NCBI GenBank assembly: GCA_964247055.1
Contig: OZ176060.1
Coordinates: 434,001 to 498,000, forward strand
Source: Paragordius varius
Lineage: Eukaryota; Animalia; Nematomorpha
Length of the DNA stretch: 64,000 bases
Direction: 5' to 3'
Shown: positions 10,655 through 46,915 of the stretch, one piece after another
Numbering within the stretch: the first letter of the stretch is position 1
How the letters are laid out: each line of letters begins with the position of its first letter
The notes under the pieces: model-generated
The model's input: the letters and a program-made list of their open reading frames with translations, nothing else
Databases searched by the model: none
What the model was told of the DNA's origin: nothing
Program-made: the position numbers and the translations under genes

Positions 10655-12238
10655 GGGGAAGTTACAAGGGAGAAGAAAGTAAAAATATTAATATATGTAT
10701 AAAAGATAAAATAAATAAAAAATAAAATATATATATATATAAAATATTACAATGATGCATTCGTTGGGTTGTTGTCTGTGAGGGAATTTTGACCGCTCAT
10801 AAACATGTGGTACATATCGGATGAGGATTTTATTGTATTGGTAACTATTGATTTCTTAAGTTGGGTAGGGCATCGGAACCTGATCTTCTCAAAAAGAACA
10901 TCGTTTTTCGAATACCAGGAACCGAAACTCCCTACGACAATGGAAATGACTTGGGTGTTGCTGTATGTTTCCTGTAAGTGTTGAGCCATACAGCTATACT
11001 TCATTATTTTATTGTTGAATGCCGTTTCGAACGATTCTAGCCTGTTTCCAAACGGCACTGTGGGATCAATGATAAAGCAATCAGTGCCATTTGTTACAAT
11101 GAGGTCAGGGCGTAGTCTCGACGAATCGATGGCTTGATTTTCACTTAAGATCTTGAATTTTGATGGGAGGTTGTCTTTAATCAGGTCCACTATGATGTTG
11201 TGTCTTTTGGTTATTACATTATCATCTTTGAGGCAATGGTTTAAAACATGTGCTTGGGTTTCTTTAGATTTGCCGCAACGACGGCACATTTGTTCAGACG
11301 TCCTGAGACGCGCATTTTCGTTGGTAGGAGATTGAGACGCGCTTGATGGATGAAATTCCAGTCTTTAAAACGAAGATCCTTATTATTGTATAGGAAGTGG
11401 TGACTGACCTTATCATCAGCAACGCACTCCATCACCAGACACCCTGCAAAGCAAAATGATGTAGCTCAGTATTCATTAATTTTCGTTTATAAAATTGAAG
11501 GTTAGAAACAACAGCTAAGCGATTGTCTTGGGAGATTTTAGAGAGCTCTGAAATTATTGTAGGCTGAAAACAATCATCAAAAGACCAAAAAATTTGATTC
11601 AGACGCCATTCTCACTATTGTTTAAATGTTTTGGTATTTATTAGCTGGATTTGAGACAAGAGGTTTCTCATAACCAGATAAATACTTGCCTAATTGATCG
11701 GGAGTTATAGAATCTAATCGAACCTTACAACGAAAGCTAGCCGAAAAGTTCCTCGAGAGCAGAAACTCTTATAGAAAGATCTAAGCTAGTAAGTAATTTA
11801 AAAGCGGAATCCACACGAAATATATTAATGTCATCTGGGAATAGGGGCATCCCTAAGGCGCCCTTATTACGAGAGCCAAAAATATAATTGTTAGTGGCAT
11901 CTCTTGGAAGATTTAATATTTGTTTGAACACTTTAGTTAGTTTTTTATCTAGATATTCACCTGTAACCATTTTAAGCTCATTATTTCTCAACTGGTGAGA
12001 AATAGTGGGATAGAAAAAAGTTTTAATAGCGTCTAGCTTTTGCCAAGGGAGGAGGCTAGAACTATGAATTATCCACAATTTCCGTAGAAGGAACGGGATT
12101 TTAAGGAACTTGAGACCTACAAGCTTTCCAAGAAATTTAACAAACTCACCTTGACAGATTGAGGGAACAACAACTTCACCAATCTTAAAAACAGGACTAC
12201 AAGAAGCAATAGAAATACTATTGCACAAGGGTCAATGG
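10655..12238 (-). mobile_element. 5'-truncated, frameshifted NeSL/Utopia-like non-LTR retrotransposon (RT C-terminus, CCHC knuckle, RLE)
   Basis: KFLGK and SLLPWQKLDAIKTFFYP (end of RT and thumb); LRFKDWNFIHQARLNLLP; CRRCGKSKETQAHVLNHC; RHN; RPDLIV..IIDPTVPF..KIMKY..VGSFGSW. Stop at 10747 then an AT-rich 3' UTR shared with 53499-53593. Confidence 0.92.
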
Positions 12239-16202: not shown

Positions 16203-19200
16203 TCTTAAGAATAAATTTTATTTTATTTTTTAGTAAGTTTAATTACAGTTCATATGCAAAGTTAATCATTAATAATCAATTTAACTTGATTTTAAACATT
16301 TTTTGATCTATATCTTTTCGTCTCGTCATTTATATATTTTTTATAAAAAAATAAAACATACATTTTAGATTTCGGCGACTCAACTTACAAACTTTGGTGT
16401 GATCTTGATACTAAGCTTTATAAAGTAGAACTAAAAAATCAACAAGAAACGTATATTGATGATCCATCTAAACCGGCCTCATTTCTTAATTTGTTGGAAA
16501 ATGAAGATTTTACAAATGATGATTTACGGACAATTCTGAACGCTTCTTTCCATAACCTTTGTTATTTAAGAGAACATAAAAGCGAAAATATCTTACAAAA
16601 TAATAATTTAGACTATGAAAATAAAAATTATACCAAAACCAACAAAGATACCCTAATTAGTGATTTGGTAGGAGAACAGACAGAACCTTTAGATCTTTCG
16701 CTGAAAAAACCTCCAAAAAGTATAAAAAAAATTACTCCGGTGTGCGACAGTAGTGATTCCAATGATATAAGCATGAATGATATGAACAAGCTATTTGATG
16801 ATAACAATAATAATCGAAAACCTAATGAGTCCCTATACACTCATTTGGAGAATTGTTATCGATGTATTCAATGTGATAAAATTTATAAGGACCAACATGT
16901 TTTAGCCAGACATATTCGTTCTGTTCATGAACAAGCTAAATATCCGTGCAAAATTTGCAAAAATATTTTCTAAAGGTAATCTCGCTAGGCACATTAAGTC
17001 GGTTCATGAAAAAATTAAACATTGTCTGATTTGTAAAATTAATATTTCTCAAAAAGGCAATCCTGCAACACATATTCAATCTGTTCGTGAACAATTAAAA
17101 CATTTATGTCCCATTTGTAAATACGAGTTTTCACAGAGAGAAAGTCTTGGAAGGCACAAATCTGTTCATAACAAATTAAAAATGAATGTTCAATTTGTGA
17201 AAAGAAATAACCCGAAAAAGTATATCTTGCAAAACACATTGAATCTGTTTATAAATTAAACATCATTGCAAGGTTTATTGCCAATTAGACTAATAAACGC
17301 ACTCTTACCAGGCATATTAAAATATAAATTCTCATTTGTAAAGATTATCCAAATTTAATACATCAAAATTTTACATAATAATTTAGTTTTAGTTTTATCA
17401 TTCTTGTAAATAAAATATATTGAAATTCATTTATTTCATTGAGTCACTTGCAAAATTGATTCAATTTTATTTAAACGGATAAAATACTAGGCATGTTATT
17501 TAACCGGTCAGTAATATTTTCTGTAGATAGGCATTAAAAACATTACACACTTGGTTGGCCAATTAGCAATACAGTATAGCAAACATATAAAACAATTTTT
17601 GTTATAATAATAAATAAATTTAAAATATTTAAAATAATTAAAAATAAAGTAAAATATAATAGGATAAAAATATACTATTTTCGGTATTTCTTGTAAAGTT
17701 ACTAATTTAAATTATTTTTAATTAAAATTACATAAAGCAAATAAATAAGTTTAATGTTGTAATTATAGGAAAAACCTTTATTTCACACCGTTTGTGTACT
17801 CACACCTTACTGTATTGCCAATTGGCTAAAAATAATGTAAAGTGGGCGACAATAAATTGGGTACTGTATATGCTCTAAGTTTATTTATATAATAAATAGG
17901 CTCTACGGTTTAATCAGTCTGGCCAGCTTTTTCAATCTAAATAATTGTCAGCTTAAACTTTTCAGCCTCTTACGTATAGTTGTTTGAAAATCGCCGACTA
18001 AGAAATTAAACTTTTAAAAAATATTTGCATAAAAATCCTAAGATTAAATAAATAATTAAAAAATTTGGCGATATAGGATATAGTTCAGTAAAAGTGAACA
18101 TCTAAATATAAATACAAAGTTGTATATAAAATAATTTTCGCTTTATTGATTCTTCAATAATAGTATAAGGTCTATTTTTGATAGATTAAACATAGGAATA
18201 AGAAATATTAAAAATGAAATATACCCATATATTCAAACTACAATAATATTTCATATACATTTGAAATTCGGACAAAATTAAAATGTTAAAACAAACTTTT
18301 TCTAAAAGAGTGTTTTTCTTTATGAATCAAATTTAAATTTGAAATAGACATATGAATGATTAATTATGCAGATAGAAGTAGGATATTTATAAGAATTTGT
18401 TTTTTCGTTTTTTCTGTAAAATTTATAGTTTAATAAATATATCAATTATATTGAATAAGCTATCAACATATACAAAATATTGTTAGTGTTTACAAATTTA
18501 AAATCTTTTGTAATGATTAAATTTGAGATTACCTAATATTATTTTAAGATTTATTAAGACTAACGTGTATATTATATTATATATATAATATACTTATAAT
18601 ACGGACAAAACACAAAATATGAAACAACTATTTTTTTAAAACTTTGTCCTTTAAATTGAAAAGTATAAAAAAGAGATTATATTAGACATCAATTATTTAT
18701 TTCACTATTATAATTAAACTTATAATAAAAAACCTGTTAAATGAAAAATAGTATTTTTTAAAAAATTATCCTTATATTTTTACATGTTGGTATAATTTAT
18801 CTGTAAATCGATGGTTTATAAACTATCAAATTTATATTTAAAAAAGTAAATATCATTTAAGTGCATATTACATTTTTATTGGGCGCAAATATATTGTAAA
18901 TAAATTAGAGATTAATTAACTTTGGATATGCTATAAATTGTTATATAATAATGGGTTCTTACGTTTGCTTTTTTTACACCCGTTTTTTCCTGAATTAAAA
19001 TTGCCTAAAATACTGCTAGTAAAAATTTAATATAATTTTAATCACTTTATTATAATAAATTAACAGAATAAGTCTAATTCATTTTATTAATAATTTTTTT
19101 ATTGGATATTTTACATAAGTATTGTTTTAAATTTTATGGCCACTTAAAATTTTACCAAGTTCCGAATTCAAATATGTTCTCTAATATATACTTTGTTTAT

Positions 19201-19203
19201 ATA
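16130..19203 (+). repeat. ~3-kb block (MITE end, zinc-finger gene and downstream repeat) duplicated at about 45790-48350
   Basis: Colinear similarity across the ZF gene and from 17840-19200 to 46925-48350. Confidence 0.8.
16369..17330 (+). pseudogene. C2H2 zinc-finger protein gene with PLDLS motif (copy 1, frameshifted in the finger array)
   Basis: Acceptor TTTTAG at 16368, then an open frame 16371-16973: FGDSTYKLWCDL...EQTEPLDLSLKKPP...CIQCDKIYKDQHVLARHIRSVHE. About 5-6 further decayed fingers of type CxxC..LxRHIxSVHE follow. Confidence 0.85.
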
Positions 19204-19681
19204 CAGTATGCATTTTAATGTATGTTAAGTAATTTTATTGCCTGCCGAATAACATAAATGGTTTATCAAAAGCGTAAAATACTGACCCACAAAATTATTT
19301 CGCAGTACACATATGAAAGAAGATTGACGTGAGAATTAACATAGGCCTTAATTTGATGGATATTTTGTAATGTTAAATTTTGAGAATATTATAGCAAATT
19401 ATGTTAACATTTGTAATATTGTTGTTACGTATTTAGATGCGGAATTTTGTGGGTTTTTATCTTTGATAAATTAATAAATAGTAAAATACGTATTTTAAGA
19501 TATTTTATGTTAATTATTTTTATTAATAATAAATATTTTTCACATGCTAAATACCTGTATTAATCAATATTAGTATTATAATTTTATATACTTGTTATTA
19601 CTAATAACACAGGTAAATATATATTTGTGAAAATTTAAATATATTTTAGATTTGACTTTTATGTTTTGCATTATTTTTATC

Positions 19682-21965
19682 AGGTAAAAATTGCGGTTTT
19701 TAATAAATTTCCTAAAAATTTAGTTTTTTTTTGTTTTTTAGGTTTTGCATTGATAGTTGTAAATAATTACTACATATTTTGGACATTATAATAAATAGAG
19801 GTAAAAATTGCGGTTTTTAATAAATTTACTAAAAATTTAGTTTTTTAGGTTTTGCATTGTTAGTTGTAATTAATTACTACATATTTTGGACATTATAATA
19901 AATAGAGGTAAAAATTGCGGTTTTTAATAAATTTACTAAAAATTTAGTTTTTTGTTTTTTAGGTATTGCATTGTTAGTTGTAAATAATTACTACATATTT
20001 TGGACATTATTATAACAAATAAAAATTGTGGTTTTTAATAAATTTGCTAAAAATTTAGTTTTTTTTGTTTTTTAGGTTTTGCATTGTTAATTGTAATTAT
20101 TACTACATATTTTGGACATTATAATAAATACAGGTAAAAATTGCGGTTTTTAATAAATTTGCTAAAAATTTAGTTTTTGTTTTTTAGGTTTTGCATTGTT
20201 AATTGTAATTAATTACTACATATTTTGGACATTATAATAAATACAGGTAAAAATTGCGGTTTTTAATAAATTTGCTAAAAATTTAGTTTTTGTTTTTTAG
20301 GTTTTGCATTGTTAATTGTAATTAATTACTACATATTTTGGACATTATTATAACAAATAAAAATTGTGGTTTTTAATAAATTTGCTAAAAATTTAGTTTT
20401 TTTTGTTTTTTAGGTTTTGCATTGTTAATTGTGATTAATTACTACATATTTTGGACATTATAATAAATACAGGTAAAAATTGCGGTTTTTAATAAATTTA
20501 CTAAAAATTTAGTTTTTTTATTTGTTTTTTAGGTTTTGCATTGTTAATTGTAATTAATTACTACATATTTTGGACATTATAATAAATACAGGTAAAAATT
20601 GCGGTTTTTAATAAATTTGCTAAAAATTTAGTTTTTGTTTTTTAGGTTTTGCATTGTTAATTGTAATTAATTACTACATATTTTGGACATTATTATAACA
20701 AATAAAAATTGTGGTTTTTAATAAATTTGCTAAAAATTTAGTTTTTTTTGTTTTTTAGGTTTTGCATTGTTAATTGTGATTAATTACTACATATTTTGGA
20801 CATTATAATAAATACAGGTAAAAATTGCGGTTTTTAATAAATTTACTAAAAATTTAGTTTTTTTATTTGTTTTTTAGGTTTTGCATTGTTAATTGTAATT
20901 AATTACTACATATTTTGGACATTATAATAAATACAGGTAAAAATTGCGGTTTTTAATAAATTTGCTAAAAATTTAGTTTTTGTTTTTTAGGTTTTGCATT
21001 GTTAATTGTGATTAATTACTACATATTTTGGACATTATTATAACAAATAAAAATTGTGGTTTTTAATAAATTTGCTAAAAATTTAGTTTTTTTTGTTTTT
21101 TAGGTTTTGCATTGTTAATTGTGATTAATTACTACATATTTTGGACATTATAATAAATACAGGTAAAAATTGCGGTTTTTAATAAATTTACTAAAAATTT
21201 AGTTTTTTTATTTGTTTTTTAGGTTTTGCATTGTTAATTGTAATTGATTACTACATATTTTGGACATTATAATAAATACAGGTAAAAATTGCGGTTTTTA
21301 ATAAATTTACTATTTATTTGTTTGTTTTTTGGGTTTTGCATTGTTAATTGTAATTAATTACTACATATTTTGGACATTATAATAAATACAGGTAAAAATT
21401 GCGGTTTTTAATAAATTTACTAAAAATTTAGTTTTTTTTGTTTTTTTAAGTTTTGCATTCTTAATTATTACTAATTTTTAAGTATTTCAGACATTTTAAT
21501 CAGGTAAAAATTGCGGTTTTTGACAAATTTAGTAAAAATTTAGTTTTTTTTGTTTTTTATGTTTTGCATTCTTAATTATTAATAATTTTTAAGTTTTCAG
21601 ATATTTTAATCAGGTAAAAATTGCGGTTTTTAATATGCTAAAAATTTAGTTTTTTGTTTGTTTTTTAGGTTTTGCAATGTTAATTGTAATTAATTACTAC
21701 ATATTTTGGACATTATTATAGATACAGGTAAAAATTCCGGTTTTTAATAAATTTACTAAAAATTTAGTTTTTTTTTTGTTTTGGGTTTTGCATTGTTAGT
21801 TGTAAATAATTACTACATATTTTGGACATTATAATAAATAGAGGTAAAAATTACGGTTTTTAATAAATTTACTAAAAATTTATTTTTTGTTTGTTTTTTA
21901 GGTTCTGCATTGTAAATTATACATAGTCTTGAAATATTTTTACATACTATAATAAATACAGGTAA
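19682..21965 (+). repeat. Tandem array of a ~106-115 bp unit (about 20 copies) inside the left TIR
   Basis: Unit AGGTAAAAATTGCGGTTTTTAATAAATTT...TTTTGGACATTATAATAAATAC. About 3-4 inverted units in the right TIR (about 25730-26095). Confidence 0.95.
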
Positions 21966-22239
21966 AAATCAATGTTTTTCGGTTTTATATGTAATTACAA
22001 ATACCAACCAATATGAAAAATTATTTATATTCACAACATCTATATATAGATGCAAATAAAATATATTTATATTTAGAGGTTTAATAAATCGATAATAAAG
22101 ACCTACTATTAATTAAATCATATACTAAGCTCCAAAATGAATAAGAAGCATATTATTTTTAATTATAAATAAATTTATTTATATATAATAAATCATCATA
22201 AATCATAATTCAATGTTAGCATCATCGAGCTTTATGTCG

Positions 22240-22840
22240 ATCTATATCAACATTGTCATTGATCGTCTTGTATGTTAGATTTGCTACAATTTAATGATTA
22301 ATATCATCAATTATTATAATTGGACAATTGAATATTGAAAACACTGATTGCAATAGTGTGGGATCTTATTATAAGTAACAGTATAATTTAAACACTTGTT
22401 CGATATTCTTTATAATCCGGGTGATCATCTAAATAAAAAAAAGATTAGTGGGTTTTTAAAATTTTATATTTACTATCTCTTTTTTATGAAATATAACAAA
22501 AATACCTGATAAAAGACTCAATTTTCATCCAAAAGATTACTGGAAAACGTGGATAAAATTAAGAATATTTTACCATCATTCTTTGGGATGATTATATCAG
22601 CTAACATAAAAGAGAGATGAGTTTTTATGGAATTTAATAAAATGATATTACTGTTCCTACAATCGCTTTCCTGGATTCCATAACAGTCGGAGCTAACACC
22701 AATTAAAATAAAAAATAAATTAACCTTTATAAAATTGGAAAAATATTGTTTTATAAAAAAGAAAATAAAAAATGTTATAAATTTTTCCATCTGCATTTTC
22801 TTTATAAGAGCCAAAACTAAAAAACGAATCCCTTTCATAG
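22240..22840 (-). pseudogene. Decayed inverted paralog of exons 1-6 of the transposase gene
   Basis: The reverse complement aligns with 22925-23620, e.g. GATTGTAGGAACAGTAATAT vs GATTGTAGGATCAGTAATAT, TATCAGGTATTTTTGTTA in both, AGATGATCACCCGGAT vs AGATGATCTACCGGAT, ATTAAATTGTAGC in both. Confidence 0.85.
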
Positions 22841-23008
22841 TCTTAACAAAAAATACGAATTTGATAAAATTTTCTTCTTCGCACTCATACCATGCCAGAA
22901 AAGCTTAGGCGCCTTGTCTTCATAGTGTAGGGAATTTTTCGTGCTGTTTTGGTTGCTAAAAAGAAATAAAAGAAAACTGTAAAAAGATCATTTTTAATTT
23001 TTTTTATA

Positions 23009-25115
23009 ATGAAAAAAGTCAATTTTTGCAAATATTATGAAGGTAAATTATTTTTATATTAATTAGGGGATTCTAACAATGATAATGTCTTAGCTCCCAA
23101 CAGTATTTCGGATTGTGACAGCTATGCCCAGGAAAATGATTGTAGGATCAGTAATATTATTTTATTATTTTCTTTAAAAACTCATCTATCTTTTTATATA
23201 TTTTAGCTGATATGATCGTCCCAGAAAATGATGGTAAAAAAATCATAATTTTTCAGGATTATCCACATTATCCAGTGATCTTTGGGATGACTACAGTCTA
23301 TTATCAGGTATTTTTGTTAATATTTCATAAATAAGAGATAGTGATTATAATTAAATTTTATATAGATGATCTACCGGATGATGAAGATTTTAGAACAAGT
23401 GCATTAAATTATAAATTTATAGATAATAGGACCCCAACACTTTTGGAATTAGTGGTGTCGAAATTAGGTCACTGTCCTCCCATTATAATTACACACATAA
23501 ATAATGATTCATTTTACACTAAATATGACAATAAAAAAAAGGAAGTCGAACCTAGAGGTATCATAATTTATGTTAATTAAATTGTAGCTAATAATTCACA
23601 CCAAGCAGGATGTAGCTATATTTTAGGTTTTTATAAATTTGTATATTGTATTAATTATATATTATAAATATTTAAATTTAATCAAAAGTTGATGATATTC
23701 CTTTCAATAACAATAATTATTTGGAGAGCACTCGTGTCGTTCCTAATATATCAGATGATGAAGGTATTTAAATTTTCATATTTAAGATAATCCCACGCCT
23801 AAACAAATATATCAACCAAATTTTTATTCGGGTGCTGAAAGACATTTAATATGCAATATTAATTCGGGAAAAAATAATGGTATATTAATTTTTTATTAAA
23901 TTCTAAGAAATTCGAAAAACGCAGAATGATAAAAAGGCGAAACTATTAAGTGATATAGATGTCCGACAATTTTTTATGGATGAAAGTATTTTTTATTTAA
24001 TTTTAGCTGTTTCTATTATGACATTCGACTCTCCTGTACCTAGACGCACTGCTACGAGTAAAAACATAATTTATATATAGATCGATCATTTTGGACTGCA
24101 GAGAAATTAGAAACTGCTCGATTAATATTTAACGACTCTATTAATCATGGGGTCAGTAGTAAAAAGCTTGTAGAGCGCATTAGAATGAGTCAAACGAGTA
24201 TTAATAAGATCAGAAGGATACTAGCCAGAGGAGATGAGCTTGTAGTTGTAAAAAGAGGGAGGTGTACGTCGAAAAATAATCATATAGCTCACAAAGCTAT
24301 AAGAAAGAAAATTAATGAGTCTCCTGATTTCACGCAACAGTATCATAAATTGTTTGCCAGATAAATTATAAATGTCTTTATCTTCTCTCCGAAAACGTTT
24401 CAAAGAGATGGATGTCGTAAAAAAGCATCCTTATCGTGAACCTATCGCACGTAATATGCCCGAAAATATAGAGGCGAGGTATTCAACATATTTTTTGACT
24501 CTCTTTTAAAATTTTATTATTTTAGATATCATTTTGCACAAGAAATGATGCCTGTAAGGGCTGAAGATCAAGTGTATCTGGATGAATGCTTATTTGTCAT
24601 GAATAGAAACAGAAAATGGGTTTGGGTGGGAAGAAATGGGAATGTAGTTCTTAAAGTATTAAAAAGATCCCGGAATATTTCGCTCATATGTGTTATTGGG
24701 CTAAAAGGCGTGTTGGCCTATGAAATATGCGATGGCGCTTTTAATGGCCAAAAATTTTTAGATTTTTACAAACTGTTTTATTAAAATTAAGTAATAATCA
24801 AATTATAATTATGGACAACGCGCCAATTCATCACGCCAGAATTTTGAATAGTTATAAAAATAAAATTAAATATTTGCCACCTTATAGTCCCCAAATCAAT
24901 CCCATAGAACTTTTTTTTCCCAATTGAAAAGTAAAGTTTATAAAATAAGATATTCAAATTCTTCGGAATTAAAAATAAATTTAAAAGCCTGTCTAGATGA
25001 ATTTCCTAATAAAGATTTTTATAGATACTTTTTACATAACAGTTTAGCATTGAGAGAGTGTCTATTAAAAAAACCCATGGTATCAGAAAATATTGGATGT
25101 AAAGGCGAAAATTAG
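23009..25115 (+). pseudogene. Multi-exon Tc1/IS630-like transposase (DD30E) with a ~241-aa N-terminal extension, lightly decayed
   Basis: Predicted exons 23009-23042, 23067-23150, 23207-23233, 23257-23307, 23366-23557, 23588-23626, 23689-23763, 23787-23879, 23908-23985, 24007-24057, 24081-24478, 24526-25115. Catalytic motifs VYLDE (D 24581), IMDNAPIH (D 24814), LPPYSPQINPIE (E 24907). Lesions: frameshift plus TAA near 24340-24371 and two -1 changes in T runs near 24770 and 24915. Confidence 0.85.
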
Positions 25116-25469
25116 TCAAATTGTATGAAAACAGTTAAATATTTTTATTTTTTTATATTTTAATTTTTGCCCTTTAAAGGTAAGATTTAGCCTTTCACAT
25201 AAACTTCATCACATATACCGGTGAGAATATAAGGTGGCATTTATATTTTTATAACTATTTTTAAATTTACATAATTTTTATCAATATTTATTTTATGTAG
25301 TTGAGTTTTTTTCGAATTTAAAAATTTTGAACCTATGAAGCAATATTAGCGTTTTATATACACACACCCTTTTAGCCCAATATTTATCTTTACCTGTCTT
25401 ATTTGTATTAACATATACATATATGTTATTTTTATATTACATTATAAATTGGATTTCCCATATAATGCC

Positions 25470-26563
25470 TTCCAACATTTTGATTTATATTATGATTTAT
25501 TTTATATAAATAAATTTTTTTATATCTAAAAATAATATGCTTCTTATTCATATTTTTTGGGTAATTCGAAAATATCGGCTTAGTATATTTTGTGTGATTT
25601 AATTAGTAGAGGGTTTTATTATCGATCTTTTAAACCTCTAAAATTTTTAATAAATTTTATGTGAATATAGATTATTTTTCATATTGGTTGGTATTTGTAA
25701 TTACATATAAAACCGAAAAACATTGATTTTTACCTGTCTTTATTATAGTATGTGAAAATATTTCAAGACTATGTATAATTTACAAGGCAAAACCTAAAAA
25801 ACAAGAAAAAACTAAATTTTTAGTAAATTTATTATAAACCGTAATTTTTACCTGTATTTATTATAATGTCCAAAATATGTAGTAATTATTTACAACTAAC
25901 AATGCAAAACCTAAAAAACAAAAAAAAAACTAAATTTTTAGTAAATTTATTAAAAACCGGAATTTTTACCTCTATTTATTATAATGTCCAAAATATGTAG
26001 TAATTATTTACAACTAACAATGCAAAACCTAAAAAACAAAAAAAAAACTAAATTTTTAGGAAATTTATCAAAAACCGCAATTTTTACCTGATAAAAATAA
26101 TGCAAAACATAAAAGACAAAAATCTACTTAAATTTTCACAAATATATATTTACCTGTGTTTTTTTAATTAGTAATAACAACTATATAAAATTATAATACC
26201 AAGATTAATTAATACAGGTATTTAGCATGTTGAAAAATATTTATTATTAAATTTAGGAATAATTAACATAAAATATTTTAAAATACGTATTTATTTATTA
26301 ATTTATCAAAGATAAAAACCCACAAAATTCCGCATCTAAATGCGTAACAACAATATTACAAATGTTAACATAAATTGCTATCATATTCTCAAAATCTAAC
26401 ATTACAAAATCCATCAAATTAAAGCCTATGTTAATTCTCACGTCAATCCTCTTTCATATGTGTACTACGAAATAATTTCGTGGGTCAGTATTTTACGCAT
26501 TGGATAAACCATTTATGTTCGACTGGCAATAAAATTACTGAACATACATTAAAATGCATACTG
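25470..26563 (-). repeat. Right long TIR of the 7.36-kb element
   Basis: Reverse complement of 19204-22220 with most of the tandem array missing. Confidence 0.9.
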
Positions 26564-28090
26564 TAAAACTATTCAGATATATTTTAACCATTTTACTATA
26601 ATACGGTTTAAAAAAATTAACGAAAAAAAATAGCGGCGAAAAGTTGAGATGTTATAAATACTAAAAGGGATATTTTAAATATTGACCCAGTAAAAATATT
26701 ACTTAAGGTACAATATTAAATGCGAGTATGAAATTACGCCAAAAGTTTATGATATATTAATAAAATATTTATTTATAGCCAAAAATTAAAAATATCTGGG
26801 AGACTTTAATAGCCACATTGGCGATAGTGTGGTATTATATATTTGAAAAATATTTAATGGTTATACACTTTATGGATATAAGAATGTTGCTATTTTTAAC
26901 CCTGTAAAGAATAAACTTTTAGTTAAATCATTTAAATTATAATTAGTCAAGGGTTTGAACTAAATAGTTAATCCATTTATAAATACACCATCTATATAAT
27001 TACTTTTTAAAATAACCGGCCTCCAATTGTTAAAATAAAACAGGCTAAATGATCTTTCAATGGTTTGTAGAAAAAATGTGTTTCAGAAATGTTTTATCCT
27101 TAGTATATTCTATAAGCTTCTATTAATGTACATATACAGGGATGATGTTCAATAACTAAAACATTTATATTATAAGTTGGGCAACATTACGAAATTTCAG
27201 ATAAATTGAGTTATAACTTCAAACAGCTCCCTGATTTTATATTGACGTTTTCACATTCCGAATATATACATAAAAATCAGAATTTATTAATTCTAAAAAT
27301 TTTATAATTAAAGTTTAATTGTTAAAACTCTCTAGAAGGTCATAATTTTAATTAAACGTAAAATATGATTGTTATTATTAATACAACTTTGACGTAATGT
27401 TCTATTTATAAAGCATTCGATTGGAGATGATGTTCTGATATTTAACAAAAATTGATATAATTAAACATTTTTCTATTCCTTTTCCACCAGCTTCAAGGTG
27501 GGCGTCCTTATATGGTAATAGAAGAAGATATTCCAATAATTTAAAAACAATATAATCTATCTATAAATATATCAACTAAAAATATGTAAAACATGTAAAT
27601 GTCTTTTATATGAACAATGTGATTTGGTAAATACTCTAGGTTTTCCATAGAAGAAATAGGGTTTACGGTTTAATTGACTTACACTTAATGTAAACCCTTA
27701 TTATAAAAATGAATAAATTAAAAAATATTTTGGTGATTCAGGTGAAAAATTAATAAATATTTAACCAAATTATATATTAAATGAATAAAACTAAAAAGAA
27801 ATCCGCTCTATTACTACAGTGTATTGTTTACAAAATACATAGAAACAAGAAATAAAATTTAAAAATAAAATCTAGATATACAGAAATATCTCATATTTTT
27901 TGGAAAGATAAGTAAAGATATAACATATTGTGCAGTCAAAACACTCAGCTTCTTGTGAAGGTTGTAATTATTCGTTATCAAAAAAATTATCTGTTTTTTA
28001 AGATGGCATATATCTATATGCCTGTACGCTTTTTATGTGATTTATTTAATAATTTTTAATGACTAATAGGACTTTTGTTTTAAAGCTATA

Positions 28091-40214: not shown

Positions 40215-41270
40215 TTCCTTTTGGTTGAAGTTGATTACAATTTATTAAATAAATAATATAAATATTTTAAATACATTTGTAAAAGAAAAGGCAAATACTG
40301 GATATACATATAATACGTAGCAAAGTTAATACTCATTGTGAAAAAATGATATATATATATATATATTAATAAGAGGAGAAAGAAGACAAAGCGTGAATGG
40401 GATATTGCAAAGGAAACATATCACATATTTTGTTGTTATATAAATGCTTAGTGTTTAAATAAATAAATATGTATGAGTTATAAGGAGTAACAAGGAGGGA
40501 TGGAATGGGAGATTGCATAGGACTAATTTTGACTGAACACGGTGGCTGATTGACGGCTGAGGCAACTAAGGGAATTTCAGGTTGAGGTTGAACGTTTCTG
40601 CTGATGAACAGATGGTAGATGTCGCAGGAGGCTTTGAGAACTTCTGCGGTGAGTTCTTGCTTAAAACGGGTAGGGTATTTTAAACCAAGTGCATCGGAAA
40701 GCTTGTCATTTCGGGGGTACCAGGATCCTAGAGCTCCTATCACAACTGGGATAATTTCAACGTTAGAATATTTTTCAGAGAAGGAGCATATCAAATAATC
40801 TTATTTTGTGAGCTTGGTGTCAAATACGTCGTCCAAAGATGATACTCTGTTCTCATAGGGGATTGTGGGGTCGATAATGTAACAATTGGTATTTTCAGTT
40901 ATCACTAGGTCGGGTCGTAAGTTTTAGTCATCAACCTTTTGAATTTAAAATATAATAGAGAGTATTTTGAATATGGATTTAATATACTCTACAACTTTAT
41001 TGTGGCGCTCGGTGACAATACCTGTGTCTAACACTCAGTGATTTATTACATGCGATCCAGATTGAATCCGGTTCTTTCACCTTCTGCAAGATGTATAGTC
41101 AAACCTTCCCGGTTTGCTGTTAAGAGGGAGAAGGTTCAGTCTGGCCCTATGAATAAATCTCCAATCCTTAAACCTCAGGTTTTTGCCTGAGAATAAGGAA
41201 TGTGAAGATTTATCCAAGGCCACACATTCCATTATTCTTCCTTGGTTTAAAAAGAAAAATAGGAGTCTTC
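40215..41270 (-). mobile_element. 5'-truncated NeSL/Utopia-like retrotransposon, second subfamily (knuckle and RLE, decayed)
   Basis: NQGRIMECVALDKSSH..LRFKDWRFIHRARLNLLPLN..CRR*..HVINH*..ERHNKVV; LRPDLVITENTNCYIIDPTIPYENR; VVIGALGSWYPRND. Confidence 0.88.
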
Positions 41271-46058: not shown

Positions 46059-46915
46059 ATTTTGGCGACTCGACCTACAAACTTTGGTGTGATCTCTATA
46101 CTAAGCTTTATAAAGTAGAACTCAAAAATCACAAGAAACGTATATTGATCGATATAAACCGGCCTCATTTCTTGATTTATTGGAAAATAAAGATTTCACA
46201 AACGATGATTTACGGATAATTCTGAACGCTTCTTTATATAACCTTTGTTATTTAAGGGAACATAAAAGCGAATATACCTTACAAAATAATAATTCAAATG
46301 ATGAAAACACCGAAACCATCAAAGATACCCTAATAATTAATTTAATAGGAGAACAGACGGAACCTTTAGATCTTTCGCTACAAAAACCACCAAAAACAAA
46401 AAATAATCAATTTCGACCAAATGTGCATTTTTGCAAAAATGAGAGTGATAATAATTTTAATAATGTAAAGCCTGAAAATATGAAAAATCCTATAGAGCCC
46501 GGGAAAAATGTCTGAATGTATGCAATGTAACAAAAAATATAAAGAGCGGGATTAGTTTATCATAATAAATCTGTTCATGAACGAATTAAACGTGTAAGAT
46601 ATGTTGTAAAATGTTTTCCAGAAGCCATCTTGCTAGGCACATATATTCAGTTCATGAGAAAATTAAACATGAATGTCCGATTTGAAAAAAAGAATATACT
46701 CAAAAATGCTATCTTGCAACACATATTCAATCTGTACATGAACAAATAAAACATCCATGTCCCATTTGTAAATACGAGTTTTCACGAAAAGAAAGTCTTG
46801 GAAGGCACATAAAATCTCTTCATGAACAAATTTAAAGTGAATGTCCGATTTGTAATAAGAAATATGCCAAAAAAAACTATCTTGCAAAACACATAAAATC
46901 AATTTTCCAAAAATA
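46059..46915 (+). pseudogene. C2H2 zinc-finger gene with PLDLS motif (copy 2, multiple frameshifts)
   Basis: FGDSTYKLWCDLYTKLYKVELKN; EQTEPLDLSLQKPP; decayed fingers (HPCPICKYEFSRKESLGRHIKSLHE). Confidence 0.85.

Follow-up and report, generated by a model that had tools for sequence, protein, structure and literature searches.

Are the short open stretches that precede a transposase in very AT-rich DNA exons of the transposase gene itself, separated by introns of a few tens of nucleotides? The question is raised by a 64,000-nucleotide stretch of the Paragordius varius genome (GenBank assembly GCA_964247055.1, contig OZ176060.1, positions 434,001–498,000 of the forward strand), which we call the window and whose own numbering is used below. 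An initial annotation had proposed ten GT-AG introns between an ATG at 23009 and the transposase of a Tc1/mariner/IS630-type element. We find that the exon–intron anatomy is real and unusual, and that the copy carrying it is dead. The DNA as a whole is very AT-rich (~24% GC, ranging from 18 to 34% across the window). The standard genetic code was used for all translations; a ciliate code (TAA/TAG as Gln), suspected from the 24% GC and the tiny introns, was dropped because the standard-code model is coherent.

The gene in question lies in a 7.36-kb DNA transposon of the Tc1/IS630 type, identified as such by its TA duplications, inverted CAGTATGC... ends, a DDE_3 match and a catalytic triad. The element spans 19204–26563 (7,360 bp, + strand), as delimited by its arms and its inverted end sequences (CAGTATGCATTTTAATG...). 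It has CAGT termini, and an identical CAGTATGC... stands at both ends in inverted orientation, with TA directly outside each; the left TA target-site duplication (19202–19203) was read directly and then confirmed, and the right one (26564–26565) was read in the sequence. The outer arms, 19202–20019 and 26565–25739, are terminal inverted repeats (TIRs) with ~90% identity. The catalytic region (24526–25115, + strand; stop at 25113–25115) is spread over three frames. Pfam DDE_3 matches it at 24766–24924 (E = 6.4e-11; 42.7 bits, cut-off 28.6), together with a collinear weaker piece, and the catalytic triad falls at D 24581–24583, D 24814–24816 and E 24907–24909. Only 30 residues lie between the second D and the E, a spacing that seems tighter than those by which Tc1/mariner groups are named (DD34E, DD34D, DD37D and others).

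We rebuilt the proposed gene base by base and recovered it exactly. From ATG 23009, ten phase-1 GT-AG introns of 24, 56, 23, 58, 30, 62, 23, 28, 21 and 23 nt enclose nine internal exons of 84, 27, 51, 192, 39, 75, 93, 78 and 51 nt, all multiples of three, and splicing yields the acidic, stop-free product of 241 aa that had been described. Because all ten introns are in phase 1, any internal exon could in principle drop out in frame, as the initial annotation had noted. Seven of the introns measure 21–30 nt and three 56–62 nt. The run into the transposase holds only in part: the join to the helix-turn-helix (HTH) region is in frame, but the open frame closes at TAA 24362–24364, 93 codons into exon 11 and short of the DDE domain.

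All parts of the gene lie on the + strand. Exon 1 (23009–23042, 34 nt) contains the ATG and is the weakest exon, at 21% GC; intron 1 (23043–23066, GTAAAT..TTAG) leads to exon 2 (23067–23150), which is followed by intron 2 (23151–23206) and exon 3 (23207–23233). The similarity reported between the ends of exons 2 and 3 has to be qualified, in that CCCAGGAAAATGAT sits 9 nt inside the end of exon 2 and is terminal only with an alternative donor at 23142. Intron 3 (23234–23256), exon 4 (23257–23307) and intron 4 (23308–23365, with a 28-nt alternative at 23308–23335 that is likewise in frame) precede exon 5 (23366–23557, 63 aa), the longest of the internal exons, within which 23399–23422 is a candidate for an optional 24-nt phase-1 intron. 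Then come intron 5 (23558–23587), exon 6 (23588–23626), intron 6 (23627–23688), which has the sole GTT donor and a 41-nt alternative from 23648, exon 7 (23689–23763), intron 7 (23764–23786), exon 8 (23787–23879) and intron 8 (23880–23907). Exon 9 (23908–23985) has an in-frame ATG at 23976. Intron 9 (23986–24006) is dispensable for the open frame because it is a multiple of three and stop-free, and exon 9, intron 9 and exon 10 (24007–24057) together form one open frame. Exon 10 contains a second ATG in this frame, at 24018, where the transposase canonically starts (MTFDSPVPRRTAT), and intron 10 (24058–24080) is required to connect any Met with the HTH exon. Exon 11 (24081–24478) holds the HTH region, which is broken, and is separated from the catalytic region by intron 11 (24479–24525), 47 nt long, in phase 2 and 17% GC.

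Could such a structure be strung together from any AT-rich DNA? GT and AG are common at 24% GC, and an annotator choosing sites by eye might trace a stop-free path through non-coding transposon sequence. We enumerated stop-free paths in which GT-AG introns measure 20–65 nt and no exon is shorter than 15 nt, and found 10,080 valid paths through the real stretch, with 8–12 introns each and alternatives at most positions; intron 8 is present in every one of them. When introns were capped at 20–35 nt, no complete path through the stretch existed. From a fixed ATG, a path of equal length was found in 2 of 300 dinucleotide shuffles (0.7%) and in 13 of 516 window controls (2.5%), and the farthest reachable ATG was at least 1,074 nt away for 1.4% of random end points. 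The existence of a path is, on its own, only moderate evidence, because formal GT-AG paths also cross the broken transposase, at the cost of its catalytic motifs.

Properties that were not selected by stop avoidance are stronger evidence for a mosaic. Exons average 33% GC and introns 12%, every intron forming a discrete block of 8–17% GC, and on the + strand A exceeds T in exons and T exceeds A in introns. G occupies 27%, 13% and 11% of codon positions 1, 2 and 3, respectively, and position 1 has the top or joint-top G content in every exon; in 5,000 sets drawn at random from the open stretches of the window, this G excess was never reached. As a further control we took 670 stop-free GT-AG paths from 20 other window loci. 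The G excess was 0.155, compared with 0.007 ± 0.066 in controls, the GC gap between exons and introns was 0.21, compared with 0.009 ± 0.036, and the share of GTA donors was 0.9 (nine of ten), compared with 0.22; in each case, 0 of 670 control paths reached the observed value. The coding statistics are independent of the choice of splice sites, and across all 10,080 valid paths the G excess remained between 0.09 and 0.17. The annotated path ranks second among them in GC contrast.

A blind segmentation into AT-rich blocks gave the same picture. It returned 13 blocks, 12 of them within the ten introns, and recovered all ten introns; the thirteenth block is the optional 24-nt intron inside exon 5. 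Eight of the 13 blocks open exactly with G|TA, compared with 12.8% elsewhere in the window (P = 5e-5). From the codon-position, GC-contrast and donor statistics, together with this segmentation, we therefore conclude that 23009–24080 is a true exon/mini-intron mosaic on the + strand, now or in the recent past. The annotator's own worry, that sites picked by eye could be subject to selection bias, is answered by the same data, which place the structure far beyond chance. A pure artefact retains in its favour that the sites were chosen by eye, that neither RNA nor a homologue was found and that a decayed paralog of the gene shows no exon constraint (see below). Set against this are the rarity of comparable paths in shuffles and window controls, the fact that no control path approaches the annotated one in codon-position bias, GC contrast, donors or phase, and the blind recovery of the same introns. 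This explanation is strongly disfavoured, and we regard it as highly improbable.

Why all ten introns share one phase is a separate question. Among the 10,080 valid paths, 26% are all phase 1, and a single control path of the 670 kept to one phase. Seven of the ten donors follow a G and three an A; of all G, 54% falls at codon position 1, a donor after A has a 34% chance of phase 1, and the expected probability of ten out of ten phase-1 introns from donor context is ~5e-4. The single phase is thus only partly explained by the rarity of G in this genome, its location mostly at codon position 1 and the preference of donors to follow it.

To what gene did the mosaic belong? On balance, we favour by a small measure a long-isoform Tc1/IS630 transposase gene, now fossil, in which small exons were spliced onto the canonical N-terminus. 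About nine small exons within 23009–24080, with their host-type GT-AG mini-introns, would then be part of the transposase gene of the element, and the introns would have been removed by the host spliceosome. Splicing would add ~228 acidic, Asp/Asn-rich residues before the canonical N-terminus at the Met at 24018; the extension alone has a computed pI of 4.5 and a net charge of about -16. Such a gene would produce a long isoform from ATG 23009, in which extension and transposase were presumably once one protein, and possibly a short isoform from an internal ATG. The short form starting at 24018 would still need the 23-nt intron 10 to be spliced out to reach the HTH exon.

Several observations weigh against this reading, beginning with the state of the transposase. 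A nonsense codon and no fewer than three frameshifts interrupt its frame: a frameshift near 24340–24350, a homologous-frame TAA at 24369–24371, and frameshifts at a T4 run (24776–24779) and a T8 run (24911–24918), the two at homopolymers being possible errors of the assembly. The frameshift near 24340–24350 and the TAA also appear in a second data set, run X3, in which a contig is identical over 24208–24468. With these interruptions in its HTH/DDE part, this copy is a fossil that cannot make a fusion protein. Four lesions per ~1 kb of transposase would lead one to expect about three in the extension, some of which flexible intron choice could mask. Extra introns were considered as a rescue of the transposase frameshifts and rejected, the candidates being only 17–19 nt long or removing the IIIMDNAPIHH and NPIE motifs. 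Upstream of the catalytic region, a bipartite HTH pattern can be read by eye in exon 11; no Pfam HTH family matched, and an exhaustive search of the HTH piece among 1.84 billion representatives returned a single match, to a helicase, which is spurious. In addition, the in-frame ATG at 24018 on its own yields a Tc1/IS630 N-terminus of normal length.

A further difficulty is that the three introns of 56–62 nt would fall outside the presumed micro-intron size class of the host. It bears on another explanation, in which the stretch is a coding relic that was partly repaired by eye: some of the introns would just bypass frameshifts or stops, and the true structure would have fewer or different introns. 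The likeliest false pieces would be the 56-, 58- and 62-nt introns, exon 1, which is weak, and intron 9, which the frame can do without. The large number of valid paths, with alternatives at most positions, leaves room for such repairs, as do the lack of any path restricted to introns of 20–35 nt, the four lesions in the neighbouring transposase and the formal paths that delete its catalytic motifs. Repair of this kind is hard to reconcile with the composition of the introns, each of the ten being a discrete block of 8–17% GC and nine starting with GTA, and with the near-optimal composition of the annotated path. We consider a repaired relic quite improbable.

The 5' part of the gene is present a second time, in the opposite orientation. 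The segment 22331–22774 (- strand) is a decayed reverse-complement copy of 23009–23465, comprising exons 1–5 and introns 1–4 at 75% identity, with homology ending at 23465 within exon 5. This paralog has lost the ATG and has indels in its exons that are not multiples of three. The initial annotation had cited conservation of splice sites in it; its four donors and two of its four acceptors are indeed kept, but only as part of introns that are overall better preserved than the exons (85% compared with 74%), and they are no evidence of exon constraint. Both this difference and the third codon positions, altered at a rate barely above that of first and second positions, count against the favoured gene model. 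The quicker change of the GC-richer exons fits neutral decay towards AT. The paralog is a dead duplicate that says nothing about selection on the exons, and introns 1–4 predate the inverted duplication of the gene's 5' part, now 25% diverged. The two head-to-head copies of exons 1–5 (22331–23465), ~450 bp apart and 75% identical, would form a long imperfect hairpin if transcribed across their centre, from which small RNAs that target the element might arise. A 106-aa open reading frame (ORF) at 22518–22838 (- strand) spans the paralog's exons 2–4 together with introns 2 and 3; small deletions have left these two introns stop-free and multiples of three, and the ORF is probably fortuitous.

Neither transcripts nor relatives of the extension came to light. 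Three RNA assemblies under the same species label contain no contig on 22250–25450 even at 80% likeness, which is no proof of absence, and the alternative splicing that had been suggested as possible is therefore unsupported. Homology searches of the extension covered exon 5. A word-indexed search with this 63-aa exon found no word-sharing relative, a protein atlas gave no credible neighbour, and AlphaFold2 returned no confident fold (mean pLDDT of 56). The DDE piece had no match in its own length range in the word-indexed search, exact look-ups of three ORFs gave no record, and the window contains no further copy besides the inverted paralog. These data also bear on the proposal that the region arose by exon duplication or capture. 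Duplication finds no support, as the exon–intron units, compared with one another, form no repeat family and share only splice-site-like matches of 14–30 nt. Capture fares no better: no homologue was found for exon 5, and the depth of run X3 does not point to any parent copy of 80% or greater likeness.

Run X3 includes contigs identical to the locus at a depth of ~3–6. Its depth is 30–80 fold over 22250–23212 and ~0–9 fold over 23320–25031 apart from local peaks, and from this contrast the 5' part of the gene is common to more abundant relatives, while exons 5–10 and the transposase are about single-copy. For the latter part there is accordingly no second copy on which conservation can be assessed, the last of the points that weigh on the long-isoform gene. 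Among the exon differences listed in other run X3 copies, 5 of 11 are synonymous, which may be a weak hint of constraint. The local peaks inside 23320–25031 reach 89 fold at 23962–24068 and 35 fold at 24497–24603. Together with a peak of 532 fold at 25139–25245, the 89-fold peak suggests short dispersed repeats embedded in the low-copy stretch.

The same depth profile touches on a third explanation, which accepts the exons and mini-introns as real and assigns them to a separate upstream unit, which could be another gene of the element or part of a host gene that it captured. The transposase would then start at 24018 or 23976, and its join to the mosaic would be incidental. In agreement with this, the canonical N-terminus at 24018 sits just ahead of the first HTH, the extension has no similarity to any transposase and looks intact where the transposase is broken, exons 1–2 belong to a part of the element whose abundance in run X3 is some tenfold that of the transposase, and the prior of an in-frame join is only ~1 in 3. 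Other features tie the two together: no stop intervenes from exon 9 to the transposase start, both lie on the same strand, directly adjoining and inside the TIRs, and run X3 shows no sign of a parent gene at 80% likeness or more. We judge a separate unit to be unlikely, and return to the long-isoform transposase gene in the comparisons that follow.

To our knowledge, Tc1/mariner transposase genes are almost intron-free, known members having zero to two introns and starting a few residues before the first HTH. Tc1 and Tc3 of Caenorhabditis elegans resemble the present element in the TA duplication, CAGT-type termini, TIRs, an N-terminal paired-like HTH region, putative here, followed by DDE_3, and a single gene between the TIRs. 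The element described here departs from Tc1/mariner in its 11 introns within 1.5 kb and ~228 extra N-terminal residues, in the short interval between its second D and E, in very long TIRs with tandem arrays of 113–118 bp, and in an internal head-to-head duplication of the 5' part of a gene whose copy is broken. Literature searches turned up no work that deals with introns of hairworm-type genomes, nor any on Tc1 genes rich in introns.

Other systems share single features with it. In SETMAR and other host–transposase fusions, a mariner-type transposase is spliced in frame to upstream exons; SETMAR is an immobile host gene that captured a transposase, whereas here the upstream exons lie inside an element with both TIRs and TA duplications and encode no recognisable domain. 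The Drosophila P element likewise has a multi-intron DNA-transposon gene whose splicing pattern decides the protein, but it belongs to another superfamily and has three ordinary introns, and splicing in the present element is a prediction. Foldback-like elements and Galileo have very long inverted arms with tandem arrays of unequal length; they use other transposase families (the P superfamily in Galileo), unlike the DDE_3 enzyme and TA duplications found here.

What would a gene of this kind imply? A wider reading, which we put forward tentatively and hold to be more doubtful than not, is that tiny introns of the host have spread into this animal's DNA-transposon genes at very high density, here 11 in ~1.5 kb with ten in one phase, and that the extra exons are a lineage-specific acidic N-terminal module. 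If true, this lineage would acquire introns easily, through a process that favours one codon position, and in young multi-copy transposon families it would be possible to date recent intron gain in an animal that is selective for site or phase. Family copies with and without each intron would then offer a direct test of how and when introns arise, which is otherwise hard in animals. If it is translated, the acidic extension would represent a novel type of accessory region for a Tc1/IS630 transposase. For annotation, ORF scanners and standard gene finders would call such genes broken or lose their 5' halves, so transposon and gene annotation of this genome would need a micro-intron-aware model.

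The remaining observations concern the element as a whole and its surroundings. A subterminal tandem array occupies the left arm at 19685–21969 (period 113 (345), ~19 copies) and recurs in the right arm at 25726–26090 (3.1 copies of 118 bp). Its unit (113–118 bp) carries a CAGGTAAAAATTGCGG-like motif, a candidate for a repeated transposase-binding site. Overall, 19204–26563 is an imperfect palindrome in which each end is followed inwards by the TIR, the tandem array and a common segment of ~250 bp (21969–22209 compared with 25477–25726). Inside it, the two versions of the gene's 5' part face each other head to head about a centre near 22890, and the left half is without 23465–25477.

Scans of the 64-kb window for tRNA genes and Rfam families gave no match. 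Outside the element, the ORFs at 16491–17259 (+ strand) and 46180–46515 (+ strand) are nearly alike over their first ~80 residues (M-L/E-ENEDFTNDDLR...); the former continues into C2H2 zinc-finger-like repeats, and the pair look like copies of another repeated gene or transposon protein. Likewise, the ORFs at 10747–12228 (- strand) and 40366–40794 (- strand) have a common C-terminal ...GSFGSWY/GALGSWY... and look like fragments of one retroelement family.

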